Virus record (IMG/VR): IMGVR_UViG_3300030098_004828 | Coordinates: 62,001-126,000 of that record | DNA length: 64,000 bases | Strand: one strand, 5' to 3' | In this document: positions 3-62,145 of the stretch, piece by piece | How the letters are laid out: every line of letters starts with the position of its first letter | How positions within the stretch are numbered: position 1 is the stretch's first letter | Notes under the pieces: generated by a model | The model's database searches: none | Told to the model about the DNA's origin: nothing | The model's input: the letters and a program-made list of their open reading frames with translations, nothing else | Made by a program: the position numbers and the translations under genes

Positions 3-3000
3 GAAGCTTTTGCAGAATATCATAAACTTCTAGGTCCTGGACAAGAATTTACTTGGCAAGGAAAAATATATAGCACAGATATGGCAGATGATGGTTCAGA
101 ACCTTCAGAAAATAATAATGCTATTAATAATGCAGATTCTAATGCTAATGCTGATAATTCAAATATGAATGATAACAGCGACTCAGAAGAAATTCTTAAT
201 AATGAAGAAGTAGATGAGTTTAATGAACAACCTCAATTTAAAAACAAAAAAATAAAAGATACTTTTAGAATGGATAATTCTTCTTCATTAGCATTTTTAG
301 AAAGTAAATCATCTCCTCTTTTTTCTCTTATAGCTGCTATTGGAGATACTGTTGATTCATATAAATCAGAAAATTTTATAGATCCAGGATCTAAAGAAGA
401 TTATGAAAAATGGTCAATAAAAAACACTACAGATAAAGCCGGTTATATAGATGAGGATGGTAATGTAATATCAGAAAAAGACTATGTAGAAGGAGAAGTT
501 CTTAAAGGAATGCAAGAAAGAACTAATTTAGCTCCAGATGTATTTGGGCAAGCAGTGGGTTATGATGCTAATGCAAAAACAGTGGATTATAAAGGAGGTT
601 CAAAACAAGGAAACTATTTAGAGTCAATGAATCCGGATGCAAATTATTTTGGATTTTCACAAGACACAGAAGGTAATTATATGTTTGAAAACAAATTAGT
701 TACAGATAACCAAGAAGGTACAGTATATAGTCCTACAAGTCAAACAAGATATAGAAGTGATAAACTTATAACAGGATATGAAGGAGATTATTCAGATGAT
801 TTTATTCAATATGATGCAGATGCACAAGAGTATATAGATTATTCTAATCCTGATCATGTAATTCCTGATCAAGCAGGATGGCTTACTCCTATAGCTAATC
901 AACAGCAAAATACAAATAATCCTAATCAACCAACAGGTTCTGATGATATATTTGCTAGATATGGAGGAGGTTTACCTTTGTTTCAAGATAAAGGAGAATT
1001 TAGTATTAATGAACATGGTATAATAGATACATCTGAAATGGAAGGATATGATCCAGATGATCTATATGATTTCCTAGCAGAAAATTATGGTAAAGTAGAT
1101 ACATCTAAACAGCAACAAGCTCTTCTTACAAAATTACAATCTCCAACTTTTAGAGATAGATATGCCGCTAATATATATAATATTACAGGAGAACAATTAT
1201 CTGAAGATGAATTAACAGAAAGAATAAATGCTCAGTATGATTTTACTGCAGCAGGTGCACCATTTCATACTGTATATCCACCAGTTTCACATAGTCCAGG
1301 AGGATTTCCTTATTGGAGTACTACAAATATAAATCCATATCAGCCTAAAGATATTGCAACGATGGACTACTTCGGAACGGGTAATATGATGGATAGAATG
1401 AGGGGTAATAAGGGAATGTTTTTTACTAATAAAGAAGGATATGATATTTCTGAACTACCTATACCAGAACTTGCCCAGTATAGTTTTGTACCTGGTTTAA
1501 ATAAAACAAGACAGGTAGGATGGATGGGTGATAATCCTTGGACTTTTCGTGATGATGCTGATGATACAATTATACATGAGTATGCACATTCATATAATAC
1601 TGATGTATCTCCATTATTTGCACCTGCAGGTAAACAATATATTAATCCAGGAGTTTATTATAATGATAAAGCTGGTGAACGTTATCAAGAATGGTTAACT
1701 AATTTATTTGGTGAAGATTATTTTGATGAAACTAAAACAGATTTTATTTCACAGTGGTCTATGCAACCTCAAGAAATAAGTTCTATGAGATCAGAAAATG
1801 AAGCAGCATTATTATCCTCAGGAATTTGGGATCATAATAAAGAAAAATTTGGTGAGCAACATTTAAATGAATTGTTAGAATCAGATTTTTTATTTCCTAG
1901 AGGTCATTCAATGAAGCATTTACAAGCACTGGGATATGGTGAACTTCGTGGTATGAATAAAGATTTGAGTAAACAACAAAAAGAATATGATCTTCAATTA
2001 ACTAGACTTAACCGTGGTGATTTAACTGATTATATAGATAGCTTTATTATAAATAATGAGGATGATGAATTTGATAGAGACTATGTTAAAGGTGCTATAA
2101 GTACAGATAAATTTAATGAGTTATTTAATCAAAGTCAAAGTCATTTAAAAGAAAAGAAAAGATATTCTAGTTATGATGAATTATTAAGTGACTATAATTC
2201 AGGTAAAAAACGTAAAAAAGAAAAAGCTTCAGAAATATTAGATTTACTTCAAGGTAATTTAAAAGGTGAAATAGATAATATATATCAACCTAATATTGAT
2301 GAACAAGAAGAAAAATTTAATAAACAAAAGGACAAAGTATTACCTAAAATGGAAATGTACTTTAATGAAATAGTAATGGATGATAGTGATGATTTAACAA
2401 GAGCAAAATACGGGGGATCATTACCAAAAGCTCAAGATGGTATATTTGGTATAATGCAAGATGCGCAAAATATGCAAATATTAGATGATCATTATGAGGG
2501 TAATGAAAATAAAACTTATTTTACAGGTAATCCTGTTATTGAGGGTTTAGGTGATCTTAGTAGTTTTTTCGGTACTCCAAGTTATATGCAAGGTATATAT
2601 CATGATCCAAAATATAATCCTCAAAATATAAATTATAATCCATTAGCAACTATAGATGCATTAAATGAAGACATGATTAATAGATTTGAAGGTCCTACTT
2701 TTAATAGGTCTGGTTATCCTCAAATTTGGGATCCAAAATTAATATATAATGATCTAATTAGAGAAGGTGGTTTGAGAGGAGAGCATGGATATATTCCACA
2801 AACAGTACGAGGTACAAAAAATGATCCAATACATAATTCTATACTTGAAGGTGATTTAAATATGCTTGAATATACAAACAATATGCTTCTTGCACCAAAG
2901 TATAGACAAACATTAAAAATAGAAGTAAGAGAAAGTTTAAAAGGTGATAAATCTTTTAATAGATTAAGTGAAAATGAAAAAACACAAATAGTTGAACAAT

Positions 3001-5312
3001 ATGTTCAAAAAATATTAGATGATAGATTTACATCAATAAGAAATACTATATGGGGAACTAGAAAAGAAAATGATATAGGAACTGCAGGAAGTTATTATTA
3101 TAGTTATGATAATGATAATCCATACCATGTAATTTCTAATAATCCAAATGCAAGTGTTTATACAGATATACATGAGAATCAACATGCAATGACTATGGGT
3201 AACCGTGGTTTAACAACTCATGCTTTTGATACTTATAAGGATGCTAAGTGGATGAATCCACAAGAATTTATGAAACTACAATATGAAGGTATAATACCAG
3301 AAGATCTTAAGTATCAAGAAGCTTTTGGTACAGGTAATTATTTAGCAGATCCAACTGAAATGGCTGCTAGAAGAGATGAAGTTATGTATTGGCTTGCATC
3401 TAAAGGAATTTATGATCATCACGGAAGAATAGAAGGTGTACCTAGTAAATATACTCCAGAAATAGATGCACAAATAAGATCAATAATAGATAGTGGTGAG
3501 GCTCCTCACTTCTTAGAAGAGTTCTATGGTACTGACAAAATGATTAATATGGGTCCCAAAATGGGAGATCAATGGAATAAAAAAGTTTCTCCAGAAGATA
3601 TGCTTCAAATTTGGAATACTATAGCAATGGAAGAAGAGATTGGTGATGATTTAGGTATTGAATATGGAATGGGTAAATATGGTAAAGAAATCCCATTACC
3701 TAAAGCTCAGATGTGGAATTCTGAAGTAGATGATATAACAACGGAAGATCTTTATAATTCTAATGCACAAACTTATGATGCTAATACAGATGTAACAGGA
3801 GGGGTATATGGTAATCAAGGTCATAGTTCTTATAATGATGGAACTGGATCTAATGCAGGTAATCAAGTATTTGTTCCTGAGCCTTATATAGGAAATGTAA
3901 ATGGAACATGGGGTGTAGATACATCTGCAACAGCAATTACAGATGCTATATCTAATCAAGCTCTTCCTAGCGGTACACCATATGATCCTGATTGGGAAGG
4001 TGATGATTTAACAAGAGATTTCCAAATGTTTGAAGATGCTTATGGAACAGATAATTTAGAAATATTAAAAAGAAATCTTACAGGTGCAGCTAATTTTGTA
4101 CCAGATGATACAACAGTTACAACAGAAACAACAGATACATCACCTACAGATGATGAATTATTTAATAGAGAACTTACAGATTTTACTGAAGAAGAAGAAG
4201 AACAATTAGAAAAAGAAAATAAAAGAAGTTTTAAAGATAGAATTGAGGCAGGATACAATAAGATGAGGAGATTTATGGATAGTAAAGGAATGCAGGTTGC
4301 AACTAAAACTGCTAAAAACATTGTAAATATTGCATCTCCTATTAATGCTGCATTAGAAGCAAGAGAAGAAAAAAGACAAAGAGAACAAAGAATGGATCAG
4401 ATTAGATATGCTGATAATGCATATCAAATAAAGGATGCTGATTTAACTGGCTCTCAAGGTAATTATGATCAATTTGGAAATTTTAGACCGTCTTCACAAA
4501 CTATAGTTATGAATAAAGGAAAGTATGGTACAGAATTAACAAACGCATTATATGGTGGTTTACCAAAAGCACAAATAGGTGCAAATGATAATGTTGCAAT
4601 AGAAGGTGATACTTCAGGTAATGTAAGATTGGAGGGTAATATAGATGTGTTTAATACTTGGGCAGATAGAAGTGCTAGCTGTAGCGGTGGTAGTTGTGAT
4701 TGGTCAAAGCAAGATAAATCAGGAGAAGTATTTGGAGGAATACAATTAGAAACGGGTGTTCAAGGAAGTCCCTCTATAACATCTACAACTACTCCTGCAA
4801 CAACAACAACTAATACTACAACTACAGTTGATGTAGGTGAATCAAATAATTTTGTACCAGAAGAAGTTACTACAACTACAACAACACCAGCTTCAACTAC
4901 TAAGCATTATAATCTTAATGATTTTGTATTTAATATAGGACCTAGAGCATATGCAGGATATGTAGGAGATTCTGGAATTGGATTTGGACTTGAAGCAAGT
5001 GCAGGATTTAAATCAAGAGATTTTAAAAACTTTGATCCATATGCTACAACTAGAGGTTCAATAGGATATTTGGGAGACGGTTGGGGAGTGTCAGGTTTTG
5101 GTGATGTTGATCTTTTAAATAAAACAATAAATCCAGGTGCAAGAGTTAATTATGGACCTGGATATATAGAAGGTACATATGATATAAATACAGGTAATCC
5201 AAATATAATGGCAGGACTTTCTTTTAGCTTTAAAGAAGGTGGTGAAATGGATTTAGATGAAGAAACAATTAATCAATTAATAGCTGCAGGTGCAGAAATA
5301 GAAATATTATAA
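3..5312 (+). CDS. Large modular virion (cargo/ejection-type) protein, 5'-partial, with two HExxH zincin-like modules and a C-terminal beta-rich module
   Basis: The frame is open from base 3 (EAFAEYHKLLGPGQEFTWQGKIYSTD) into the ORF-track Met at 81, so the gene starts upstream of the window. Contains IHEYAH (1572-1589) and IHENQH (3168-3185), each followed by a PxE..R motif, plus repeated YGG..LPKAQ motifs. Confidence 0.75.
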   Translation, partial: EAFAEYHKLLGPGQEFTWQGKIYSTDMADDGSEPSENNNAINNADSNANADNSNMNDNSDSEEILNNEEVDEFNEQPQFKNKKIKDTFRMDNSSSLAFLESKSSPLFSLIAAIGDTVDSYKSENFIDPGSKEDYEKWSIKNTTDKAGYIDEDGNVISEKDYVEGEVLKGMQERTNLAPDVFGQAVGYDANAKTVDYKGGSKQGNYLESMNPDANYFGFSQDTEGNYMFENKLVTDNQEGTVYSPTSQTRYRSDKLITGYEGDYSDDFIQYDADAQEYIDYSNPDHVIPDQAGWLTPIANQQQNTNNPNQPTGSDDIFARYGGGLPLFQDKGEFSINEHGIIDTSEMEGYDPDDLYDFLAENYGKVDTSKQQQALLTKLQSPTFRDRYAANIYNITGEQLSEDELTERINAQYDFTAAGAPFHTVYPPVSHSPGGFPYWSTTNINPYQPKDIATMDYFGTGNMMDRMRGNKGMFFTNKEGYDISELPIPELAQYSFVPGLNKTRQVGWMGDNPWTFRDDADDTIIHEYAHSYNTDVSPLFAPAGKQYINPGVYYNDKAGERYQEWLTNLFGEDYFDETKTDFISQWSMQPQEISSMRSENEAALLSSGIWDHNKEKFGEQHLNELLESDFLFPRGHSMKHLQALGYGELRGMNKDLSKQQKEYDLQLTRLNRGDLTDYIDSFIINNEDDEFDRDYVKGAISTDKFNELFNQSQSHLKEKKRYSSYDELLSDYNSGKKRKKEKASEILDLLQGNLKGEIDNIYQPNIDEQEEKFNKQKDKVLPKMEMYFNEIVMDDSDDLTRAKYGGSLPKAQDGIFGIMQDAQNMQILDDHYEGNENKTYFTGNPVIEGLGDLSSFFGTPSYMQGIYHDPKYNPQNINYNPLATIDALNEDMINRFEGPTFNRSGYPQIWDPKLIYNDLIREGGLRGEHGYIPQTVRGTKNDPIHNSILEGDLNMLEYTNNMLLAPKYRQTLKIEVRESLKGDKSFNRLSENEKTQIVEQYVQKILDDRFTSIRNTIWGTRKENDIGTAGSYYYSYDNDNPYHVISNNPNASVYTDIHENQHAMTMGNRGLTTHAFDTYKDAKWMNPQEFMKLQYEGIIPEDLKYQEAFGTGNYLADPTEMAARRDEVMYWLASKGIYDHHGRIEGVPSKYTPEIDAQIRSIIDSGEAPHFLEEFYGTDKMINMGPKMGDQWNKKVSPEDMLQIWNTIAMEEEIGDDLGIEYGMGKYGKEIPLPKAQMWNSEVDDITTEDLYNSNAQTYDANTDVTGGVYGNQGHSSYNDGTGSNAGNQVFVPEPYIGNVNGTWGVDTSATAITDAISNQALPSGTPYDPDWEGDDLTRDFQMFEDAYGTDNLEILKRNLTGAANFVPDDTTVTTETTDTSPTDDELFNRELTDFTEEEEEQLEKENKRSFKDRIEAGYNKMRRFMDSKGMQVATKTAKNIVNIASPINAALEAREEKRQREQRMDQIRYADNAYQIKDADLTGSQGNYDQFGNFRPSSQTIVMNKGKYGTELTNALYGGLPKAQIGANDNVAIEGDTSGNVRLEGNIDVFNTWADRSASCSGGSCDWSKQDKSGEVFGGIQLETGVQGSPSITSTTTPATTTTNTTTTVDVGESNNFVPEEVTTTTTTPASTTKHYNLNDFVFNIGPRAYAGYVGDSGIGFGLEASAGFKSRDFKNFDPYATTRGSIGYLGDGWGVSGFGDVDLLNKTINPGARVNYGPGYIEGTYDINTGNPNIMAGLSFSFKEGGEMDLDEETINQLIAAGAEIEIL

Positions 5313-5314
5313 CT

Positions 5315-7942
5315 ATGGCAAGAGTAAAAATAAAAAAGCTTCCGCAAGGAATGGAACTTAAAGATGGTAAACTAGTTAGAGTTATGGCTTCAGGAGGAGC
5401 TACTAGAACTGGAGATCAAAGAAATTATGGTTTAGTTAAATTGCCTGAGTTAATTGATGAAAAAGATGATAGCGGACAAAAAGCATATAGTGAAGTTAAT
5501 AAAACTTTAGGACCTGTACCAAGAGATGAAGCTAATCTTGAGGCAGAAAAAGGAGAAACTGTTTTAACTGATATGAATAATGATGGTGATTTTGAGTTAT
5601 ATGAAATTACTGGTAATAGACATTCTAGTGGAGGAACTCCTTTAAGATTGCCACCTCAATCTTTTGTATATTCTGATACTCAAAAAATGAAATTTAATAA
5701 AGATGAGTTAGCTGAATTAGGACTAGATCAAAAAAAGAAAATTACACCAGCAGATGCATCTAAAAAATTTGGATTAAATGAATTTATAGAAAAATTGGAT
5801 AATGAATATGATGATCCAATTTCAAAAGAAACAGCTCATTATATGTTAGATAAAAACAAAATGAAGTTATCTCACATAGCGTTTTTACAAGAACATAAAA
5901 AAGAATTTAAAGAAGGTGTACCTTTAGCATCTTATCCTTATATACAAAAACAAGGTATAGATCCAATACAATTTTCTTCACAAGTTCAAGGTATAACTGA
6001 ACAAGAAGCTCAAGCAGAAGCATTACTACAAATGCCTGTAGATATGCAAGCAAAAATAATGGAGTTAAAAAACTTCATGCAACAAGTAAGTCAAAAAGAT
6101 GCACAAGAAACTCAGGCAGTTAATCATCAATTAGCAATGGGTGAACCTCCTGTTGCTCCAATGCCTCAAGGGCAACAACCTATGATGCCACCTCAAGGAC
6201 AACCAATGGCTCCTCCTCCAGGAATGCCTCAAGGAGATCCTATGCAAGCGCCTATGCCACCACAACAACCAATGGCACCACCTCAAGACATGGCTCAACA
6301 ACCTATGCCACCAATGGGACAACCAATGGTTAAAGAAGGAGGAGATCCTTTTATGAATAATGACTTATATAATTTCATGTATGGTGGAGATTTACCTAAA
6401 GCACAAAATGGAAGAAATGTATATTACAGTCCAAATGCTACAGCTAGTATGGATGCATTAACTCCGTATTATTCAATAACTATGGCTGAAGATATAGGAG
6501 AAGGGGGATATGCATATACACAAAAGGGACCAGAAGGAGGATATTATGGTGATGTAGATTCTGATCATATGGAAGTTTTCTATAATAGAAATAAAGATAT
6601 CATGTTAGATATGGGTATTGAAAGCTATGATCAGTTTAATCCTGAAACTCATACTCAAGATTATCAAAATAAATATAATGAAAGACTGAAAAATGCATGG
6701 GATAATAATCCAGATTTACAACAACAATTTAGAAATAAACTTAATAATCAAGATGCAGGATGGGATGAATTCTCAGAATTAGGATTTTATGGTCCAGAAG
6801 GTAGTTCTACACATGCTGATAATCAATTTGGAGAATATACTTGGAGTAGACCTGGTTTAAATGCACTTGAAGTAGAAGAAGATCCTTGTCCTAATAGAGA
6901 TAGTGTTAAAGCACAATGTGATGCTCAAGGATTACCATTTATTGAAGCAGAATGTAGATGTGGAGAAGGAGAAAAAGATGATCCTATACAAAAGGTAACC
7001 GAAGAAGTAGATCCAGAATTTTGGTTGCAGGATAAAATGAAAGTTGCTGGAGCTATAGCTAATAAATTTAATATTAAAAAAAGATATCCGTGGGCTCCTA
7101 CATATGATGAACAGCAGATAGATCCTGTATTTACAAGTCCAGATAGAGAGATAGCAGCTTTAAGTGAAAATGCTAATCAAGCATTAACTGCTGCATCTAA
7201 ATTTTCAGGACCTCAAAGAACCGCTGCTTTTGCTTCTCAAATACAAGGAAAATTAGCTGATCAAATAAATGATACAATAAATAAAAATGCTGCTGCTAAT
7301 ATTAAAGTTGCAAATGATTCATTAAAAACAAATGCTCTTTTAGCACATGAAGCTGATAAATTAAATAAAGCTTCTAAGCAGAATCTATATGACAAGACAA
7401 TATTAACAGATGAAAATTATGATATTGCTGTAGCTAAAGCAAATGAGCAAATATTAAAACATACAGCAAATGCATATACTAATAGAGCATATACTCATAA
7501 TTTAAATGAATTATATCCTCAATTCAATATTAATCCAGAAACAGGTGGAATAGCAGAGTTTGATCCTAAATATACACAGGAACCTCAACCTAAAACTCCA
7601 GCTGAAAAAGATGCTGCTTTAAAAGAGTATATAAGAAAAAATAATGAATTGAAAAAACAGAACATGGAGATAGGGGATATGCCTGAAGAATTAAGAAATC
7701 AAATATTTTTAGATGGAAATAATCCAGGAGGTGATGATCAGTGGAAAAATTTATTTACAGATCCTTCATCTAGTCCTTATCCTACAGGGCCTGAGGCTAC
7801 TGGACCAAGTCCTTTAATTGATCCAAGTATGTTAGGTTACCCTGGTGCTAAATGGGGAAAAGAAACGAGAAAGCAAAGAATAGCAAGAAAAGGAGCGGAA
7901 TTAAGACAATGGTTTTCACCATTAAGAAAAAGATGGGTATAA
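5315..7942 (+). CDS. Putative virion structural/cargo protein (875 aa) with a Pro/Gln/Met-rich linker
   Basis: Long ORF starting 2 nt after the upstream stop. N-terminal ANLEAEKGE...GNRHSSGG motif of a kind recurrent in crAss-like virion proteins; MYGGDLPKAQ motif shared with the upstream gene. Confidence 0.6.
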   Translation: MARVKIKKLPQGMELKDGKLVRVMASGGATRTGDQRNYGLVKLPELIDEKDDSGQKAYSEVNKTLGPVPRDEANLEAEKGETVLTDMNNDGDFELYEITGNRHSSGGTPLRLPPQSFVYSDTQKMKFNKDELAELGLDQKKKITPADASKKFGLNEFIEKLDNEYDDPISKETAHYMLDKNKMKLSHIAFLQEHKKEFKEGVPLASYPYIQKQGIDPIQFSSQVQGITEQEAQAEALLQMPVDMQAKIMELKNFMQQVSQKDAQETQAVNHQLAMGEPPVAPMPQGQQPMMPPQGQPMAPPPGMPQGDPMQAPMPPQQPMAPPQDMAQQPMPPMGQPMVKEGGDPFMNNDLYNFMYGGDLPKAQNGRNVYYSPNATASMDALTPYYSITMAEDIGEGGYAYTQKGPEGGYYGDVDSDHMEVFYNRNKDIMLDMGIESYDQFNPETHTQDYQNKYNERLKNAWDNNPDLQQQFRNKLNNQDAGWDEFSELGFYGPEGSSTHADNQFGEYTWSRPGLNALEVEEDPCPNRDSVKAQCDAQGLPFIEAECRCGEGEKDDPIQKVTEEVDPEFWLQDKMKVAGAIANKFNIKKRYPWAPTYDEQQIDPVFTSPDREIAALSENANQALTAASKFSGPQRTAAFASQIQGKLADQINDTINKNAAANIKVANDSLKTNALLAHEADKLNKASKQNLYDKTILTDENYDIAVAKANEQILKHTANAYTNRAYTHNLNELYPQFNINPETGGIAEFDPKYTQEPQPKTPAEKDAALKEYIRKNNELKKQNMEIGDMPEELRNQIFLDGNNPGGDDQWKNLFTDPSSSPYPTGPEATGPSPLIDPSMLGYPGAKWGKETRKQRIARKGAELRQWFSPLRKRWV

Positions 7943-11673: not shown

Positions 11674-14600
11674 ATGGCAGAAGAAACACAAATAATTCCA
11701 GAAGGTTCAGGAAAAACAGGTAATGTTTTTGAAGAAGGGTTAAATGTTAATAGCACTCCTAATGATGCTAATTTAGATTTAACATCATCTTCTGTTGTAG
11801 ATAATTTACCTTATGATAATACACCTTTACATACACCCGGATGGAAAAATATATCAGATGTTGTAGCTGAACAAGGTGAATATTTTGCAGGACCTCCTGG
11901 AATGAATATAGATCCTTCTATATGGGCAGATGTTGGTAGAATGGATAAGATGTTAGCTGAACATGGTCTTGGTAATAATAATAACTTTTATAATCCTCTT
12001 CCTGGACAATCTGCAGGATCATTTAATCCTTTTGCAGAAAGCTCAGGAATTCTTGATCCTAATACTCTTGAAGGAAGAAGAGCTAAATTAACTCAAGTAA
12101 TTAATAATGCTCAACAAAATACACCTGGAAGAAATCCCGCATATAGAGATCCTATTTATTATGGAGCTAAGGCTTTTAATTTAGATAGATATACTAGTCA
12201 TCCAGCTTTTGATAGATTAGGTTTTCATCCTTTTGCAGATAATGATGCTTACTATAATGCAAATTCTAGTAAATGGGAAAACTTTCAAAGAACTTGGGGA
12301 GCTTTTGGTAGTATGTTTCATGAAGCATTTACAAGCCCTTGGAGATCTATAGGAGACTTTTTAGAAGGTGATTGGAATAGGGCTGATTATATAGGAGCTT
12401 CAGCAATGGAAGATGCTATGAGAATAGGTAGATCTACAAAAGGTGGAGTAGGAGGATTTTTTAATGATTTATTTTTAAATTTTTCATATACTTTAGGTAT
12501 TATTTCAAATGTTGTTTTAGAAGAAATGGCTCTTGCTGGAATAACATATTTATCAGGAGGTACAGCTGCTCCTGCTGCTGGTGCTAGAACAGTTTATAAT
12601 GTTGGAAGAATAATGAGGACTGGTGATAAAATAAATGATGCAAGAAAAGCTTCTCAAAGAACATTAGAAGCTATGAAAAATTATAACAATGTTAATAATT
12701 TTTGGAAGTTTACAAGAGGTGTAGGTAGATGGACTATGCCACAAACAGCTCAATTCTATAGAAGATTGCGTACTGCAGGTAGTACTGTAGATAACATGAA
12801 CAATCTAGGGAAATTAAGATTGGGTGCTGGTGCTCTATATAGAGATCTTAGAATGGCAAATTTAGCTTGGTCAGAAGCTAAAATGGAAGCAGGTCTTGTT
12901 GAAATGCAATTGCGTAATAAAAAATATCAAGAATATAGAAGAGCTAATAATGGAGCTCATCCAGATGAAGAATGGTTAAACGCATTAAATGTAGATGCAT
13001 TAAATGCAGCACAAACTACAATATTTTGGAATGCTCCTTTTATTCATTTAACTAATCAATTTGTTTTTCCTGGCTTAGGACGTGGTTTTAGAGGTGTAGG
13101 TAGACAATTTGATGACTCATTAGATGCAGTACCAGATGCAATACAAAGAGAATTAAAGAAACAAAAACCAAGTGGTATGCCTGGAAAATTTTATGATGCA
13201 GGTAAAGGTGTTTCTAGAATTAAATCAGAAGGTCTTAAAGGAGGATTAACTAAAGGTGCAAATTATGCATTAAGATATTTTGGAGCTAATGTTGGTGAGG
13301 GTGCGCAAGAGCTATATCAAGAAGCTGTTGCTGTAGGTGTAGAACACTATTATGGAAGTCTTTTTGATATGAGATTATCTACAGGATTAGATCTTCAAAG
13401 AGCTGATATGGAATTGTCTGCACAACAAGGTAGTAAATTATTTTGGGATTCTTTTCAAGAAGGTGCAAACTCTCAAATGGGATGGAATGGTTTTAAAGTT
13501 TTTATGTCTGGATTTATGATGGGGGGATTAGCAAGAATGGTTCAAACTCCAGTTTTAGATTGGGCTCCCAATTATGTTAATAAAAAATGGAATCAAGCTA
13601 AGTATGATAAATACGAAAAGCAAAAAGAAAAATTTAAAGCAAATGCTTTAGAGTATTTAGAAAACGGTAGAAAAGATCCTTTACATGTATTTGATAAAAC
13701 AAAAATAAATGTATTAAATCAAAGAGAAGCAAATCAACAAATGTATGCTGCATCTTTTTCTGGACAAGCTATGGAACATTATGATGCAAAAGATTGGGCT
13801 AAATTTGAACACTTTGAAACATATGTATCTATGGGTAAAACTCATCATTTTATTGATATAATAGATGATTACTTAGCATTAGATAATAAATCTTTTAGAG
13901 AAGCTTTTCCAGTAGAAACATATCCTGATTCAGTTGCAAAAATTAGATCTAGATTAGAGCAAAACAAAAAGGAAATAAATGAAATGAAAAGGAAGTATGA
14001 GGAAAGAAAAGAATTATACTCCAATCCTTTTAGTGAAGACAGATTTGAAGAAGGAACTGTATTATATCAACAAGAAAAATTACGAAGACTATCCTATGAC
14101 CATGCTAGAAAATTAGCTATGTATGTAGATTCATCTTTTGAAAGAGCTGTAGAAAGAATAAACAATATGTATAAAGCTTTATCTAGTGGGGATCTTAAAG
14201 TTTTAAAAAATATACAAGCTAATGAATTAGATCCTTTAATGGGTAAAAGACAATTAGAAGCAGAATTAGAATTATTAAATGTTGAACTAACAGGAACACT
14301 TAGTCAAAAAGATATAAAATTTAAAACTAAAAAGAAAGAACTTCTTACAGAGTTTTCTAATATAATTCATAATCCTAAATATCAAACTCCAAAAACAAAA
14401 GTATTTAGTAAAACTCATATGCCTAAATTAAGAAAAGCTTTTACAGATTATCTTAATTTTTTAGCTAAAGCAAAAAATGAATTTGTTGAAAGTAAAAATA
14501 TTGACAAAGCTCTTAATGCAATAGTTGATACACAATGGTTAGAAAAAAGATCAGGAGATCTTCATGATGCTGCAAGAATTTTGATGAATCCTAAAAAACT

Positions 14601-17600
14601 AGAACAAGTAGCAGATAGAATAAACTTTTCTATGAGAAGAGTTTGGAATACTATGCGTGATAAAAATCATCAAATAAAAGAAATAGATAAGTATATTAGA
14701 GAGACAGAAAGAATGGCTGTATTACAAAAGCTTTCAGAAGAAGATATATATCCACATCCAATTCAAACAATGATATACTTAGAGCAAGGTATAAAACCTA
14801 CTCTATTTTATAATAAGAAAGGTATTATAGATCAATTAAATCAACCAGAAGAACATAAAAAAATACTTAGTATTTTTAATTTAAGTGATGATACATCAGA
14901 AGATGGAAAAGATGCTAAAAAAGAAAATGCAGAAGAAATAGAAAAACAAGCTAAAGAAAGTAAAGAAAAAGATGAGGTAGAAAAAGAAGAAACAGATTTA
15001 ACAGTGGGTGGAACAGGGGAAGTTCCTGATGAAAAAAAGAAAGAAAAAGAAGAAGAAGTAGAGTATGAAGTTCCAAAAAATACTGATAGTGATAGTACTA
15101 TAGTAGATTTAGTACCAAAAAATAATGATAAACCTCCAGCATCTTTAGGTAAAGTGTTAAGTTCTGTAAACAATGATACAAAAATTCAAAATGTTCTTAA
15201 TAATAAATATGAACAATGGGCAGCTAATCAAGCACTAGAAGATCCTAATAGAAGTATAATGACTCAAGAATTATGGGAACAAGATGAAACATTAGGAGGT
15301 GCAATAAAATCTGCAAGAAAAGAACTTTTTAAATTATATGCTAAAAAGGTAAGTCTTAAAGATAGACAATCAACTCCTTTTGATACTTGGTTAAAATCTA
15401 ATGCCGCAAATTTAGAAGTTGATGATATTATTGAAAAATATCCTTTAGCTACTAGCAGTGTGCAAGATATTATGATAGGTGATGTTACAGCAGTACAACC
15501 TATGCCTGAAGAAAAATTAAATCCTAGTTTAGAATCTATAGTATCTGATGGTAAAAAAGATAAAACAGGAATATGGATTCTTAAATCATCAATAGAATTA
15601 GATCCTGATGCAGATCCTAAAGAACTTTATACAGTTACTGATAATAATAAAATTGATTTGTCTGAGAAGTTTTTTCATTTAGATCCTGCATCTTTAGATC
15701 CAGATGGTTATGATACATTAGATGAAGCACAAAGAGCTAAAGATAAAATACTTAAATGGTTAGGTAAACCAGAAGATAGAGATTTTGTTTTTGATGGAAT
15801 ACAGTTTAGAAGAGGAATGAGTATTGTTAAAGGAGAAGATCTTAATGATTGGAAAAATGCTGAACAAGAAGATAAAGGAAATTATGAATGGACAGTAATG
15901 GCCAATAAAAAAACTGTAGAAAATAATAATAATGTATGGATTCAAAAAAAGGTTGGAAATACTATAGAAAAAGGAGACAAGCCTATAGTATTAGAAGAAG
16001 GTGATTGGGCAGCTGATGGATGGGTTATTGAGTTTGATGCAAAAGAATTATCACAAAAAGAAAAACAAAAAACAAAAACTAAATTACAAAAGACAGAACC
16101 TTTACAATTTTTTGCTATTACAGAAAGTAAAGGTGAAACCACTTATACTAAAATAAAAAGACACGAGAAGCTTTTAAAATCAATGACTCCTGAAAAACAA
16201 AAGAATCTTGTATTACGTATAATGAGAATGGAAGACTTTGAAGAAAAAATGAAGATTCCAGTAAAAAAATTAACACCTTTAGAATTTGAAACTAAGCAGC
16301 CAAATAAGAGAATTAGAAAAGGATATGTTAAACATAGAGTCTTTTTAGAATATGATGGTTATGATATTGCAGAACTTCAAGGTATACATTCTTCAGTAAT
16401 ACTAGATGAAAACAATAAGGAATTAAATCCTATGACAATGTCTAACAAACAAATCCTTGAAACATTTGTTATGGGTGAGCATGATAAAGCTAGAGGTGTA
16501 ACAGAACAAGAATTTGCAGATACTGTTAGAAATAACTATAAGCAAGGATATCTTATAATGAAAAAGATAGATGAATATATGGGAGAAAACTTAGCAACTG
16601 AGATTCCTTTCTATATAGAGGGTAAAAAGAATCCTGTCTTAGAAGATATAGGTATTACTATACAAGCTGGTAATATAGCATATTCAACTTCAGTAGCTAA
16701 TAGAAGTACATTTGATCAATTAGAATATAAATCTGCAGATAGTAAAATAAATAAAGATGGTTCTAAAGGTAGTCAAGTTATTTATAGTTTATATAAAGAT
16801 AAAAATGGAGATTGGAGAGAAGCTCCTTTTGATAATTTTGATCAAGCTACTACAGAGAATGAAGATTATAGAGATTCACAATTAGAATTAATTGAGAATG
16901 ATAGAAAGATGGTAGATTTAGATATTAAGTCTTTAGGAAGATATGTAATGGTTATTAGAGATGATAGAGGGGTTTATACTTATGCAGCTTTACAACCTAG
17001 AGAAAAAACTTCTGTAGAGTTAGAAGAAATGTTTACTCAATTAAAAGAAAGACATATAGAAACTTTAAAAGAAAACTATGTATCTGTAGAGGGAACAAAT
17101 AAAAGAATGATTAAAAAGGGTAAAAAATATACAGATCAAGGTTTTGGAATGCAATACAATAATGAATTTAATTCAAACTTTTCAGAGACCCATTTCATTG
17201 CTAGTAAAACAAAAGGAGATGTTATTGTACTAGGAGTAGATCCTTATGGAAATATTAATCTAGAGTATTTTAATAGGATAACAAAGCATGAAACACGTGT
17301 GTCACTTAATGAAGAAGAAGTGGCCACTGCATCAAACTTTTTAGAATTATTAAATTTACTTAATGAAAAATGGAAAAAAACAGAATGGGCTAAAGCTTAT
17401 AAAAAAGTAGAGGGAACAAAAAAAGCAGTTAAAGATGTTAATAGACCTAACTTTAAAATACAACCTATAGACTTTAGAATTTCATTACCAAGAACTATAA
17501 CTACAGAACAATTATCAGATGTTAAAATATTAATACAACCTGAAATAAGAAAAAATATACGTACAGTATTAAGTTATACAAAACAATCTGAAATAGATAT

Positions 17601-20600
17601 GCTAACTGCAAATGCAAGTTCTATACAATATAGACATTCATTTCTTAAAACGTCTTCAGAAAAGAAAATAGAATCAGATGAAAGAGAGGCAATAAATGAA
17701 CCAGAAGCTAATAAGATAGGAACTACAGACAGTGTAACTACAATGTTTACCAATTATCTAAAAAACGGTAAAGCTTCAAATGAATTATTAGATTCTTTAT
17801 CAGATGCTTTAGTTGCAGCTCAACAAGACATGTCTGTTTATGCAGCACAAGCTCTTGATATAGTTAAGAAAGCAGGACTAACACACCATGATGTTAAAAA
17901 TGCTCTTGATTTTGTTTACTCTTTTAAATTTGATAGTGATTTTGTTAATCCTATTACACAAAAAGTAATAGGAACAAAACAAGATCTAATGGAATATGTT
18001 CATACAATAGCATTAGGAAAGAAAAAAGTTACTGAATATACTCAAGAAGAATTAGATAATATGGATTCTGTATTTGAAAGTATAGATAATTTACACGATG
18101 TTGTACAAGCTGTAAATAAACCTATACTTCAAAGAGCTAATCAACTTTTAAAAGATGACAACTATAAGGTAGAGCTTCAAGCTATGGTTGATAATAAACT
18201 TTACAAATCTATGCCGGGTGGAACTAGTACACAAAAAGCTAAACAGAAAGGTCCTGCTGTAAGTATAGTTAATAAAGAAAAACAATTTAATTTAAAAGCA
18301 TATCAAAAAGCTCAAGAAGAACTTGAACAGTTAAATAATGCTTTAGAAGATGCAGCTTTTGATGAGGCAGTAGTACGTCAAGAATATATTAATTTAAAAA
18401 CTAATAAAGCTAAAAATGACTTTATACAAACATTAGAAGATACAGGTGATTTTAGAATTTTAGAAAATAAAAATAAATGGAATAGAAGAAATGTACTTTT
18501 AGAATTAATGAATCAATATGAAGCTGATATTAAAGGTATAGATCCTAATTTAGCAGGAAAATTTTTACCAGAAGTATTAAAATCTATAGATGAACATGAT
18601 ATAGCTAGACGTCAAGAGTTTATTGAATTTATGAGAGAGAATCTTCCACAATTTATGGTGGATAGAATAGATAATTTAGAATGGAATTCTGAAAAAATGG
18701 GAGCTTTGATGGGAGCTTTTGTAATAGATTTAAAATCAGTTGGTCAAGGTTTAACATTAGATAATCTAGTTGGTAAAGTTTATTTGAGCAAAACTTCTAA
18801 ATTTGATTATCATGAGGCAGGTCATGCTACTATGAGAATGCTTATGACAGATGAAGAAATTGCTACATGGATGGCAACTGCTAGAAAAAATGTTAGAGCA
18901 CAAATGAGATCTAAAGAGGGTTACAAAATAGGTGAAAATGCTGATGGTAGTTCTATAATAGTTAAAAATGTAAAACAAGCTTTAGAGCATTTAAGATTAC
19001 AGTCCTATATGTATTCTCAAATGTCTGATAATCTATTAGAGAAAAGACTTTATGAAGAAGATATCTGGGATAATTTTCAATTATATAAAGAGAATCCTAA
19101 AAATAAAAAAGTAAGAAAAGAATATAAAGGATTCTTTAGCTGGTTAGTTGAAATGATTAAAAAAGTATTTAAGTTTTTTACAACTAGTTATTGGAATAGT
19201 ACAAGGTCAAGTGGATTGGGAGGTCCTTATGATTCTTTATTTGAAAAAATAGATAATGGAAAATATAGAACAAGAGCTATTCAAAAAAATCAATTTACAG
19301 AAGGATTTTTAGAAGGAGGTTTATCTTTTAAATATGCTTTAAAACCTATTCCTACAGGAAGACCTAAAGTATTAGCAACAAGTAAATTAATTGAAGGGCA
19401 AGAGCAAGAAGTTCTTAAACAAGTTACAGAGTATTTTCCGCCAGAAGAGGAAGCAAGATATGTAGCTAATATAGTTAAGATATATTTAGAGCTGTTAGAT
19501 AAGATGGAGGGTAAATACATACCCAATAAAGTTCTATTAGATGCTGTTAATATTGTTACAGAGAGTCTTAATCCTAAAAGACAAATATTCCAAGATATGG
19601 ATCCTGGTGATTATAGAAAAATAAAATCACAATTAAAAAAAGACTATGCAGCATTAAGTAGTCCAGAAGCAAAAAGAGCTTTAATGAAATCTGCAAGAGT
19701 TGCTTTAACTAGACATGATCAATTTCAAGATGCATTTGATGAAATGATAATGGATAAAGATCATGAATTAGAAGGAAGAACTAATGAAACAAGTTGGGAC
19801 GAACAGTTACAAGAAATAGGACCAGAAAAAACAGCTTCAAGATTTGTAAGAGATCTTATTGCCACAACAGTTCTTACTGATCAAGCAGGACAACCTTTAG
19901 GAGATAAAAAATATGGTTTTAAATGGTTAGATGATGCTAAAACAATACCTGCTGTTCAACCTGTAGATTATATGAAAGCTTTTAATGCACTTCTTTTAGC
20001 AGGAGAAGGTATTGAAAATCATTATGAAAGATTTAGAACTATATGGAATCAAACTCACTATAAGCCTGATCTTAAAGCAGTTATGGTAAATATACTTAAT
20101 TTATTGGGTGTAAAACCTGCCCAATTAAGAGGTAACAGTTGGATGCAAAATGTAGAAAAAAATGGGACTGCAAAACAACAATGGTATTTGGGTAGAATAA
20201 TTAAAGCTTTTGATACAGTAAGAGTTGATTATTATAATTTAATTCAAAGTGATTCAGGAAATACAAAAGGTTATGTCAATATAATTAATGCAGCTCATAA
20301 AGATGATGCATCTAATCAATTAAGAAGTGCAACTAATGTATATTTAGGTCTTGATTCAAAATGGCAAGGAGAAGGAAAAGAATCAAGAAAACTTCACAGG
20401 CGTGCAACAGGTGTTTTAAATGATTGGAATAATATATTGTCTGAAGGAAAACCTATGACTGATGCAAAATTAGCAAGAAAGTCTAAAGAAATAAGTACAA
20501 GACTAAGAGAAAGATTGGGTATTGAACTTCATCCTGCAACTATAGAAAATAGTATAATTAATTTTATAGAACTTAGTACTGAATATCAAAAACAATTATT

Positions 20601-23600
20601 CAAACAACAAAATAAATTACAAGATTCTAAACAATTTAAATGGCAAAAAGATGATGTCTTTTTCTCATTAGAAACTATTTCTACTTTAAGAGATGCTAAT
20701 GTTCCTCATCAATATCTTAGTTTATTAGCTCATAGTCAATATCTTGAGTTTGATGAAATGAGTGATAAAGAATTTAAATCTGTAATGAATGAAAGAGAAT
20801 CAGGTGCTTTAGGTAGATGGAGAAGAATTTTTAGAATTAATGCTTTATATGATCCTAATGTTGGTCATACTGTATTTAGAGATATGAAAGGTAATTGGAT
20901 ATATGCACATCAAATTCCTACATATACTATAAGAGCAATGCAGAAATGGAATGATTTAAATCATCTTGATAACTTAAAAGCAAAAAATTGGTTTAATAAA
21001 AATCATAGTTATTTTTTACAGTCTCCAGATTTTAGAGCGATGAGTAAAAAAGGTATGCATAGAACAACTAGACTTTTAGGAGGAAAGATGACTTCTATGA
21101 AAGTTAAAGATAATAAGTTAATAGAAATGAGAATGAAAGATGAAGCTCCTGCAAAAGGTGTTTCAACAGGTGAAATGTCTCCTGCTCAAATATATTCTTC
21201 ATTAGCTAATATGATGTTGAAATTCTATAATGCTGAAAATCAAGAAGTTACTACTGTAGTAGACGAAGATAGAAACGGTTATGAATTTGCCTTAATGACA
21301 AGTCTTTTAAGAACTAGATCAACATCTAATACATTTGATTTTGGAGATTTTCCTGTGTTAGATGCTGTAATTAAAAATAAATCAGGACAAAGTATTATAA
21401 ATCCTGAGTTTGTTGAAATGGTTATAAGATGGATGATTCAACCTCAATATGAAAGAATAAGATTAGAGAATGCAAGATTTAATAATGTTAATGAAGGTAT
21501 TCCATTAACAAAAGAAATAATAATAAACTATAATGATTTTGCAGATCCTACAAGTGATCTTACTTCTATATATCTTCAAACTGATTTATTAGATATTGTA
21601 AATATAGCAAGTGGTATAAAGAAAATAAAATTACCAAAATTTGTTACAGAAGCTGAAACAAAAGATATACTTAGTGGAAAGCAAACAGCATTCTTAAGAA
21701 CAGCTGAAGGACAAGGTAAGATAGGTTTATTTGGTGAAGGGAAAAGAGCTGTTGTAGAAAGTGAAGAGGGTACATTTGTTCTTACTTATCATGGTTTTAA
21801 AAACTCAGATGCTTTTGATGATATAAATGAAATAAAAGAAATGTTTGGTGCTAGAATTTTAGATAAGAAAACTCTTACTCATACTGAAGCTATAAAAGTT
21901 GGTAATGAGTTTTGGTGGACAGATATGAAAGTAATTAAAAATTTCTTTAGTCAGAATCAAGCTAAAAAAGAATCATACAAAAGACATTTATATACTATAA
22001 AACCTTTAGATGCATATACAGGAATGTCAGGAAGTTTGGCAGAAGAACTTTTACAAAGACAAGCTTTAGAGGTAAATAAATGGTTTGGAAGTCATAAAGA
22101 TGAAAATTTTGCAGAAAAAGTTGCAGAAGAAGATGTTGTAGTTGTATTTGGTGCAAATAGCCTAGGACTTCATGGAAGAGGAGGTGCTGGATTTGCAATG
22201 GGAAAACAAAGAAGTTTAAAACAAATAGAAGAAGTAGAAGATGGTACTGTAGGAGATTATGCAATTAAAGGTAAGACAGGTATTATGCAAGGATCTAAAG
22301 GTCTTGGATATGGATTAATTACTGTTTCTGGAAAGCCAAAAGGAAGATATGGTGGAGCAAGCATGACAACAATAGAAATAGTAAATGAAATAAAAAATTT
22401 ATATTCTTTAGCTGAAAATAATCCTGAAACAACATTTAAAGTTCTTTATGAATTAGAAGAAAATGAAAAGAGTTTAAATGGATATACAGGTCAAGAATTA
22501 GCAGATATGTTTGTATCGGCAGGTGCTATTCCAGAAAATATACAATTTAATGAAACGTTTGCTGACTTATTATATGTATCAAAAGATACAGGATCAAGAA
22601 GCAGATTAATGGCAGATGTTAATACTAAACTTACTGAAGATGCACAAACATTAGCACAAGATGGTGTGACATTCAAAAAATTTAGAGAAGAATTTCAAGG
22701 ACCTAATGGTGAATCATTAGTTGAAATTGTTACAAATAGATTACAGGCAGATTTTGATGCTTGGCATATTTCTTTAAGAGACACAGGTGCATTAGATTTA
22801 ATTAATCCTATGCTTAAAAAAGATGGATTAACAAGTAATTCAGGTAAGAAAAATAAGAAAACTAAATTAGCAAATAAATCTTTAGGTTTAATACCAGGTA
22901 ATGCTACACATAACTTAATGCAAATATTTCTTAATGATTATTTTAATACAAAAGCAGCAATGGCTTTATTATTTGGAGATGAAGCAAAAGTTTTAGGAGG
23001 TTCTCAAGATAAAACTAAAAGAGGCCCTGCTCTTAATTATGGAGGAGATAATGTATCTTCACAAGTTGCTTCTCCAGAAAATGGAATTCCTACTCCTGTT
23101 AATAAATTTAAAATTTGGGTTTATGATGATACTGTAGCACAAGATATGTTTATGGGAACTGAGATAAAAACAAATGACGCTTATGTTCTTGCAACTACTT
23201 TTGGACGTAGAGCTATAGCATGGGGATTAGGTATAGGGCAATTAGCAATGTATCCTATGATAGATGAGATTGAATCTAATCAAGAAGGTGGTATGTCTGC
23301 CACAAGATATTTAGGCAATAAAGAAACTGGAGAAGAAGGTTATAAAAAGTTTGGAGCAAATTTAGCATCATTAAAACTTGCTTATATGGATGGGAGCAGT
23401 ATGCTTAAAATGACTGTAGGATCTGCTACTCCTGAAATGATTAGTCATTATGATGGTACACCTATGGAATCATCCATACCATTGTGGAATATGATGGAAA
23501 AAATGAGACAATGGGAATCTAAAAATCCAGGTCAATTTGTATTAGCGGTTCCAAGATCTGCAGCTAAAATGTTAAAAGTAAATCCAGCAAATATTAATGA

Positions 23601-61777: not shown

Positions 61778-62145
61778 TAAATAAATTTATCTTCGGTATT
61801 AAAGTCACAATCATAATAATAATCTTCTGTAATACGTTGTGTGTGATGAATTTTAACATCCCATGGATCTTTTGTACAATCAATTATCATTTGACCATGA
61901 CCACCATCATTATTAATCCAATCCCATTCTACATTATCACTGACCATATTATATAGTAAATCATCCCATGCATGCTCTACTTCACCGGTCATATTTACAT
62001 TAATCTTTTTTCCATCAATATCTTCAAATCTAACTTCATCTATACATCCATCATCACCACCACCATTATATTCTACTTCTATATTTGCTATATTGTGATC
62101 TTTAATCACTTGAACTGCTACATTTCTTTTTAGTTTTTTTTCCAT
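61777..62145 (-). CDS. DUF6878-like protein
   Basis: VEYNGGGDDGCI...WINNDGGHG pattern (family name from recall). Confidence 0.5.
   Translation of the reverse strand: MEKKLKRNVAVQVIKDHNIANIEVEYNGGGDDGCIDEVRFEDIDGKKINVNMTGEVEHAWDDLLYNMVSDNVEWDWINNDGGHGQMIIDCTKDPWDVKIHHTQRITEDYYYDCDFNTEDKFI

Follow-up and report, generated by a model that had tools for sequence, protein, structure and literature searches.

A two-part G-G/LPKAQ peptide motif at module junctions in giant proteins of a crAss-like phage lineage

Two adjacent giant proteins of an uncultured phage, ORF1 and ORF2, share a repeated twelve-residue signature, K-Y-G-G-x-L-P-K-A-Q-x-G. Their open reading frames (ORFs) lie at the beginning of a 64,000-nucleotide stretch of DNA, referred to here as the window (positions 62,001 to 126,000 of the 245,646-bp IMG/VR virus record IMGVR_UViG_3300030098_004828, or G000:C1:62001-126000); positions below are those of the window unless the prefix G000 marks those of the record. 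We found that the motif recurs across a phage lineage, that selection on it acts at the level of the peptide, that it lies in disordered linkers at the boundaries between unrelated modules, and that its two halves are separable. Most likely it is a processing or docking signal for proteins carried in the phage particle.

Motif copies in ORF1 and ORF2 and among relatives

ORF1 (3-5312, plus strand) is cut by the window edge. Its true start is 2,409 nt upstream, and the full ORF (G000:59594-67309) encodes 2,572 aa, begins MNKKLRKYQEGG and contains eight to nine motif copies. Those upstream of the window are KYQEGG at aa 7, KMGGQILTKAQDG at aa 142, KYGGSFRAQNG at aa 335 and YGGSLPKFQG at aa 730. 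Within the window, RYGGGLPLFQDKG (957-995, aa 1122-1134, including RYGGGLPLFQ at 957-986) stands directly before the fold of a module termed zincin-1, and the canonical copy KYGGSLPKAQDG (2406-2441, aa 1605-1616; the string AKYGGSLPKAQ spans 2403-2435) lies in a linker modelled with a predicted local distance difference test (pLDDT) score of ~30. A variant, GKYGKEIPLPKAQ, follows at 3672-3710, and an extended form, KYGTELTNALYGGLPKAQIG, at 4518-4580 (GKYGT..LYGGLPKAQ at 4518-4574) matches the form of the pre-window copy at aa 716-737. ORF1 closes with FKEGG (5229-5243) and a conserved 24-aa C-terminal tail, ..LIAAGAEIEIL, the two together occupying 5229-5309; all of these features are on the plus strand.

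ORF2 (5315-7942, plus strand, 875 aa) has one full copy and several half-copies. The double glycine of its N-terminal leader is found in MASGG (5384-5398, aa 24-28), of which G27-G28 are invariant or nearly so in the ORF2 family. The junction motif VKEGG ... MYGGDLPKAQNG (6326-6412, with VKEGG at aa 338-342 and MYGGDLPKAQ at 6377-6406) lies after a P/Q/M-rich linker, and AKWGKE (7847-7864, aa 845-850) is a conserved K-x-G-x-E element near the C-terminus with G848 and E850 invariant or nearly so across the family. Every motif string listed by an earlier reading of this DNA (the original prediction) was found at its coordinates in the two proteins when the sequence was re-read.

The tetrapeptide PKAQ occurs four times in the six frames of the window, always in ORF1 or ORF2 and always preceded by YGG or YGK. 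Over 5,000 shuffles of ORF1 plus ORF2, a loose version of the motif had a mean of 0.001 occurrences compared to 7 observed, and a strict version a mean of 0 compared to 3 observed. Because self-comparison of ORF1 by BLAST found no internal repeat besides the motif, the motif is the sole thing that the ORF1 modules have in common, and an origin as part of a duplicated domain was rejected.

A tblastn search identified 364 IMG/VR stretches that encode an ORF2 relative, 80 of which were analysed, and the locus set used here comprised 82 loci. Comparison of protein termini across the loci defined four slots with conserved ends: slot 0 (ORF2), slot 1 (ORF1), slot 2 and slot 3. The loci reach 10 kb either side, and slot 3 and the giant downstream ORFs are therefore counted only in part. 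Metagenomic protein collections yielded more than 678 homologues of ORF2 itself, many of them from Tara or other marine sources and on contigs of ~95-125 kb, and the motif was present at the equivalent place, after a P/Q/M-rich linker, in 45 of the 120 best homologues. PKAQ was found 103 times in the 82 loci, on the coding strand every time, flanked by L at -1 (73), G at -4 (65), G at -3 (45), Y at -5 (38) and G at +5 (85), and the motif thus extends to a nearly invariant glycine two residues past the glutamine.

A small profile built from these PKAQ contexts was scored at a threshold of at least 4 bits on the plus strand and at least 3 bits on the minus strand. The one or two hypervariable proteins encoded upstream of each ORF2 homologue (219,000 aa) gave 92 matches and the homologues themselves (68,000 aa) gave 28, versus 2 in the equally large downstream proteins (222,000 aa) and zero on the minus strand of the 82 loci. 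LPKAQ was the top enriched 5-mer of the upstream proteins, with 50 distinct contexts versus 0 downstream; K.GG alone was enriched just 1.5-5-fold and KAQ.G 24-fold over the downstream giant proteins. The number of copies per protein ranged from 0 to 9. Most copies were internal, and the idea that the motif marks protein ends was rejected. Neither the capsid and portal proteins nor the two giant proteins of 5,791 aa and 2,593 aa carry it, and the signal is not general to the virion block, a point on which the original prediction needs revision.

Codon choice at the motif was the same as background usage (GGT/GGA, CCA/CCT, GCA/GCT, CAA/CAG), which places selection at the level of the peptide. 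Together with the lineage-wide distribution, this bears out the predicted peptide-level signal. A degenerate DNA pattern for GG.LPKAQ.G matched at least 120 IMG/VR stretches, and 78 of the 80 listed were within long ORFs in the usual K/R-x-GG context. The corresponding pattern for YGG.LPKAQ.G retrieved only two records from 596 Gb of prokaryote genomes, both belonging to this phage lineage. These were deposited among metagenome-assembled genomes (MAGs) as 'Clostridium sp.' (L206, JBLHPD010000256.1) and as 'Rickettsiales bacterium' (L207, CBDHFF010000001.1, a 120,283-bp contig). Both carry the junction motif plus the slot signatures of the lineage and appear to be phage contigs that were binned with, or submitted as, bacterial genomes. 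Since the sole prokaryote matches are phage contigs, the motif is lineage-specific and not host-borrowed, and host mimicry was rejected. Literature searches on LPKAQ, on Crassvirales polyprotein cleavage sites and on Leptolyngbya phage Lbo-JY46 returned nothing relevant. The junction motif is new, in that no retrieved paper describes it, and is kin to known phage targeting and processing signals.

Linkers, module boundaries and the two halves of the motif

An AlphaFold2 model of ORF2 (50-sequence alignment) was folded at residues ~60-270, 420-470 and 570-750. Residues 274-417, which hold the P/Q/M-rich linker and the junction motif, had a pLDDT of ~30, giving a layout of a conserved N-domain (aa 60-270), a disordered motif-bearing linker and a helical C-domain. 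The model had no Foldseek match in the PDB and only generic long-helix matches with VIA-align (Z up to 8), the family profile matched none of the PDB sequences, and searches of ORF1, ORF2 and the 1,216-aa ORF against Pfam and PHROGs gave no match.

Two ORF1 modules on the plus strand, zincin-1 (993-2378, with HEYAH at 1575-1589 and a conserved downstream E-I-S-S) and zincin-2 (2442-3671, with HENQH at 3171-3185), allowed the boundaries to be placed. The zincin-1 model (25 sequences; pLDDT 79.6, predicted template-modelling score 0.77) was folded at a pLDDT of ~80-95 from model residue 30 to 491, between motifs at residues 18-30 and 500-511, and both flanks were below 50. The G-G sits ~11 residues past the last helix of one fold and ~9 residues ahead of the next. 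An exhaustive HMMER search with ORF1 aa 1100-2060 against 1.84 billion representative proteins aligned zincin-1 from query residues 20-38 to 509-532 and zincin-2 from 501 to 946. Because these alignment ends fall at motifs, both modules run from motif to motif, as the original prediction had it. The zincin modules aligned in 37 database proteins at offsets of 98 to 2,152, with the motif flanking them there too.

Similar boundaries emerged from the comparison of ORF1 with its relatives, in which BLAST blocks began or ended at motifs (ORF1 aa 342-758, 726-1196, 1135-1616 and 2210-2322). Across 161 upstream proteins, a homology breakpoint lay within 25 aa of 87% of 99 motif sites, compared to 57% for random positions (maximum 70% in 200 draws), and alignments crossing a motif were half as common as at random positions. 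Counted from the breakpoints, the enrichment of motifs was just two-fold (13.7% versus 7.0%). The motif thus lies between unrelated modules, as predicted: ORF1 has no other internal repeat, and relatives present the modules at other offsets and in other combinations with the same flanking motif.

The identity of the two modules is less firm. Among 20 homologues of zincin-1, H224, E225 and H228 were at least 90% conserved and E290 was invariant, and HExxH in a zincin-like context was enriched in the upstream proteins (38 in 250,000 aa). Neither module had a Pfam or PHROG match, Foldseek found nothing in the PDB for the zincin-1 model, and the best zincin in VIA-align was neprilysin at rank 40 (Z 5.4). 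We call these modules putative zincins by their conserved HExxH...E signature, no convincing fold match having emerged for the zincin-1 model, and the earlier assignment needs qualifying to this extent.

The motif divides at the glycines. Its upstream half, [KRQ]-x-G-G, stays with the upstream module and its downstream half, [LI]-P-K-A-Q-x-G, with the downstream module. Homologues of zincin-1 kept the C-terminal flank ..MA-[KRQ]-[YD]-G-G even without LPKAQ, and two proteins that end at this flank (P0125 and P0130) keep ..KYGG or ..TGG and lose LPKAQ. Conversely, the N-terminal flank [LI]-P-x-A-Q-x-G precedes the module even where no G-G stands before it, and among 137 distinct N-caps, 60 had a G-G within 8 residues upstream and 13 the Y-G-x-E form. 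When modules internal to ORF1 are found at a protein start elsewhere (L019, L015, L007), the motif is in the first 12-25 residues, and separate proteins that start with an ORF1-type module begin 12-20 residues before the G-G with the whole motif kept. Among slot-0 proteins, 61 of 61 had a G-G within their first 40 residues, compared to 47 of 60 slot-1 and 0 of 52 downstream proteins; at the other end, 55 of 61 slot-1 proteins had one within the last 45 residues.

These positions correspond to the conserved ends of the slots. The slot-0 protein has a leader ending in G-G, the conserved N-domain and K-x-G-x-E near the C-terminus; the slot-1 leader ends K-x-Q-x-G-G and its C-terminal end is [KQ]-x-G-G-[EQ] followed by the 24-aa tail ..LIAAGADIE[IM]L. 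Slot 2 (3,330 aa in this phage) usually begins ..GLPGGPNE.. and ends ..YDKLNR..PNYI.., and slot 3 (2,730 aa) is a muzzle-like protein with conserved ends whose N-terminus, ..F.KGM.KD, resembles that of the crAss001 muzzle gp44. Between their conserved ends, slots 1 and 2 are hypervariable, ranging from 413 to more than 3,000 aa with differing content. The 24-residue slot-1 tail, ..[VI]D...L..LIAAGADIE[IM]L after K-x-GG-E (5229-5309 here; L007-L085 among relatives), is strongly conserved and common to slot-1 proteins that are otherwise unrelated; it could be either a handle for assembly or a tail that is removed. Slot-2 proteins (L005, G000:39001-59000; L008-L085) share a ~90-aa N-terminal module, ..GLPGGPNE...EGYK.DSPD.NNP.NII.., and a C-terminal signature, ..YDKLNR.HY..AK..PNYI.., around a hypervariable middle, which in relatives included PG_binding_1, three LysM domains and a weak YkuD-like match.

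Cargo setting and the role of the motif

ORF1 and ORF2 are located between the muzzle-like protein and a putative giant zincin/virion-RNA-polymerase polyprotein. In crAss001, the muzzle gp44 is followed by the cargo proteins gp45 and gp46 and then by the RNA-polymerase proteins gp47/49/50 (PMC10172136), and phi14:2 has a zincin (gp65), an RNA polymerase (gp66) and gp67, versions of which are sometimes fused in Crassvirales into a polyprotein that is 'likely cleaved' (PMC10172136; bioRxiv 10.1101/2020.03.07.982082). The order here is crAss001-like, comprising the muzzle-like protein, ORF2 and a giant protein with a YHEA(F/G)H zincin and a DFDxD-type motif; crAss001 gp47 has YHEAFH at 2157. ORF2 resembles the cargo protein C1 (gp45) in size (~800-900 aa), in a basic N-terminus ending G-G, in a long disordered middle and in gene position, and is positionally equivalent to it by synteny. 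Unlike crAss001, this lineage has two extra hypervariable proteins (slots 1 and 2, including ORF1) between the muzzle-like and C1-like proteins, and crAss001 lacks an LPKAQ-type motif. The crAss_CARG1 profile of the compact portal-binding domain (PF25725) had no match in the whole record at E<=10, ORF2 had no Pfam match at E<=0.1, and a language-model and structure look-alike search with ORF2 (score 0.90, template-modelling score 0.43) gave only a lead. Judging by gene position and family context, we therefore infer that the two proteins are virion cargo, packaged and ejected into the host. The synteny of muzzle, C1 and zincin-bearing gp47 with RNA polymerase supports the virion-cargo setting that had been predicted.

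The giant protein downstream is the 5,791-aa ORF (11674-29049, plus strand), with YHEAGH at aa 2380, GADMDND at aa 4355 (~24736) and no junction motif. Its zincin is conserved lineage-wide (HEAGH at 18811-18825, plus strand), relatives and crAss001 gp47 reading YHEAFHxVF. At the GADMDND site, four of seven database relatives read SGADFDIDK, which we take to be the DFDxD motif of the crAss virion RNA polymerase, altered here to DMDND. At the level of these motifs, the ORF appears to fuse a gp47-type zincin with a DFDxD-type RNA-polymerase motif. Its conserved zincin region had no tblastn match in cultured phages, and a weak match to DUF7831 was also seen in this ORF.

We propose that the motif would act as a two-part junction signal in the disordered linkers of hypervariable 'beads-on-a-string' cargo proteins. 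A payload module would end in a C-cap (a hydrophobic residue, K/R/Q, x, G-G) and the following module would open with an N-cap, [L/I]-P-K-A-Q-x-G, with the same G-G element closing the short N-terminal leader and also preceding the slot-1 C-terminal tail. Our leading, though tentative, reading is that a sequence-specific endopeptidase cuts between the halves, at or just after the G-G. Such a cut would take place while the particle assembles or once the protein has been ejected into the host envelope. Leader and tail would come off, and the individual modules, which would be HExxH peptidase-like domains and, in relatives, peptidoglycan-binding domains, would be freed. Processing fits the linker geometry, the separable caps, the G-G at leader ends and before the tail, and the pattern of gene fusion and fission; it also fits the abundance of peptidase-like modules in the same proteins and the adjoining lineage-wide zincin. 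The literature describes fused crAss-like virion polyproteins as 'likely cleaved' (Drobysheva et al., bioRxiv 10.1101/2020.03.07.982082). The conserved zincin of the 5,791-aa ORF would be a candidate for the processing enzyme. Co-folding of its region with a 35-aa motif peptide (2364-2468) gave an ipSAE of 0.00 in both runs, which, performed without controls, counts neither way.

Several observations weigh against cleavage. No cleavage products were observed. The twelve conserved residues flanking the putative scissile bond exceed most protease sites and look like a binding motif. The 5,791-aa polyprotein, the one that the literature expects to be cut, carries no copy, and approximately one third of the related loci have no LPKAQ-type copy, just K-x-GG-[DE], which still recurs in slots 0-2 of these phages. 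The paper describing crAss001 by cryo-EM and mass spectrometry contains 0 occurrences of the word stems of 'proteolysis' or 'cleavage' (PMC10172136). Neither the prohead proteases S77 (PF03420) and S78 (PF04586) nor the cysteine proteases C39 (PF03412), C5 (PF00770) and C48 (PF02902) had a match at E<=1 in the whole record; only HExxH modules were seen, and no CPD or Rhs-type releasing protease turned up, although no dedicated search was made for one. The original prediction of a cleavage or docking signal is partly supported: a peptide signal lies between unrelated modules, and no prohead or double-glycine protease of these five families was detected.

Next in order, and in our judgement unlikely, the motif could be an uncleaved short linear docking motif that binds a repeated site on the portal, tail-barrel rings, muzzle or scaffold, anchoring and ordering cargo chains for packaging and for N-to-C ejection. 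Its length and composition are those of such a motif, it sits in disorder after a P/Q/M-rich linker in ORF2 homologues, and it is restricted to proteins next to the muzzle gene and to this phage lineage. Short segments of crAss001 C1 bind the ring and muzzle proteins, in 12 and 6 copies respectively, and C1 residues 245-425 span the portal (PMC10172136); gp45 has K-x-GG elements at 329 and 371, within this portal-spanning part. However, segregation of the halves with different modules is unexpected for a single binding unit, the conserved terminal regions of the slot proteins already provide obvious assembly handles, and the copy number varies from 0 to 9 from protein to protein. No partner was identified, and in the AlphaFold2 models the motif was not packed against the domains next to it in the chain. 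The capsid docking put forward originally is no better founded than portal or tail docking.

Lower in probability, the motif would serve as a hinge, a form of conserved 'punctuation' (G-G turn, proline, glycine) that is neither cut nor bound but prevents neighbouring modules from co-misfolding and lets them unfold and refold one by one while the long chain threads the tail. A Gly/Pro-rich motif in predicted disorder exactly between folds is what this would look like, and crAss001 cargo proteins are proposed to cross the tail partly unfolded (PMC10172136). A hinge would not need a near-invariant L-P-K-A-Q-x-G across hundreds of diverged phages, however; the longer 5,791-aa chain manages without the motif, and the same G-G also closes leaders and precedes tails, places with no pair of folds to keep apart. 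Least probable, and very unlikely, is a recombination junction with no protein role, in which the shared sequence persists as exchanges there give viable chimeras. Conserved boxes of tail-fibre genes and the VENN motif of CdiA are precedents, and the extensive shuffling of modules, the coincidence of motifs with homology breakpoints and the separate travel of the halves would all be expected of it. Against it, synonymous positions vary as background and even imperfect identity extends over just ~15-20 nt, so that no DNA box is conserved; what is conserved is the amino-acid sequence, including the isolated glycine at +5.

Processing signals with some of these properties are known. The T4 capsid-targeting sequence and the gp21 prohead protease process the internal proteins IPI-III and Alt, and in jumbo phages the processing of head and ejected proteins is a related concept. 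As in T4, a short conserved peptide is carried by proteins that would be packaged in the head and ejected, a leader would be cut at a defined site and unrelated payloads share the signal; unlike T4, where the signal is N-terminal only and ends L/I-x-E, the motif here is G-G based, mostly internal and multi-copy, and no S77 or S78 protease is detectable. Double-glycine cleavage is used by bacteriocin leaders with C39 proteases, by the adenovirus protease at (M/I/L)xGG|x and by African swine fever virus pS273R, which cuts pp220 and pp62 at GG|x. There, a G-G core with a conserved hydrophobic/basic context before it serves leader removal and the cutting of structural polyproteins in the virion, and the hallmark of G-G at leader ends and between putative mature parts is present here. 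Those systems offer no counterpart to the conserved prime side, LPKAQ-x-G, and no C39, C5 or C48 protease was found here.

Conserved ends with interchangeable internal modules are also the hallmark of polymorphic and multi-effector toxins, and are present here. MARTX and polymorphic toxins (Rhs, CdiA VENN, MuF-toxin fusions) likewise combine conserved delivery ends, interchangeable modules and a conserved junction. In contrast to them, the vehicle here would be a phage particle, processing is a proposal, and the payloads look cell-wall-directed (HExxH, LysM, PG_binding) and not like toxins. Possibly, although we regard this as doubtful, a lineage of abundant marine crAss-like phages uses the peptide code ..K-x-G-G / x-L-P-K-A-Q-x-G to string interchangeable envelope-attacking or effector cassettes into giant virion-borne polyproteins for site-specific release on assembly or entry, a counterpart of MARTX served by a protease of unrecognised type. 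Should cleavage be confirmed, the junction would point to a protease specificity not seen before and to a modular way of delivering effectors in podoviruses. A large part of the genome of crAss-like phages goes to giant virion proteins. The junction is of practical use: it is easy to search, points to peptides ending ..GG or starting x-LPKAQ as a concrete target in virion or metaproteomic data, allows thousands of unannotated giant proteins to be split into functional modules, and is a marker for an uncultured marine lineage, including contigs mislabelled as bacterial MAGs.

The phage, its record and neighbouring genes

The 245.6-kb record is labelled 'single virus, 100% complete', and its ORF map shows two diverged syntenic crAss-like genomes in tandem, A (which holds the window) and B, offset by ~127 kb and with syntenic proteins 24-60% identical. 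This is probably a mis-join or the co-assembly of two related phages; a run of N is present at G000:241754-241763. In phage B, one of the phages without LPKAQ-type copies, the ORF2 orthologue reads ..DTGGDF at the place equivalent to the motif, and the slot-1 protein has ..LGGIKKAQTG. Phage A is AT-rich (GC ~30%). Its 538-aa major capsid protein (G000:25778-27394) matches PF23898 Crass_capsid (E = 3e-28, 98.9 bits, cut-off 27) and its terminase and portal proteins match PHROG families, and phage A, an uncultured marine virus, is by these sequence matches crAss-like (Crassvirales). The closest cultured relative of the capsid protein is that of Leptolyngbya phage Lbo-JY46 (26.5% identity), and tblastn of ORF2 against cultured phages gave no match.

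Seven giant ORFs follow the head and tail genes of phage A and make up ~57 kb of its ~120 kb; they encode, in order, 2,730, 3,330, 2,572 (ORF1), 875-889 (ORF2), 1,216-1,220, 5,791 and 2,593-2,597 aa. A gap of 2 nt separates the stop codon of ORF1 from the ATG of ORF2 (5310-5317), and because other giant ORFs of the block abut or overlap too, tight translational coupling of the cargo genes is suggested. GC skew and coding strand flip at ~36-40 kb and ~49 kb of the window, where the virion block gives way to a replication module that runs leftward (ribonucleotide reductase, DNA polymerase, exonuclease, ATPase, HNH).

A 432-aa ORF between the portal and capsid genes (L004:5437-6735, G000 ~24436-25734) has a very acidic N-terminus and abundant predicted coiled coil, terminates ..LPRGGNNNFFKRF and has no protease signature; it looks like a scaffolding protein. 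After the 5,791-aa ORF, the 2,593-aa ORF (29070-36851, plus strand) combines a nucleotidyltransferase head of the poly(A)-polymerase/CCA-adding type (PF01743, E = 7e-19) with an HD domain and a weak match to LysM, which is unusual for so large a protein of the virion block.

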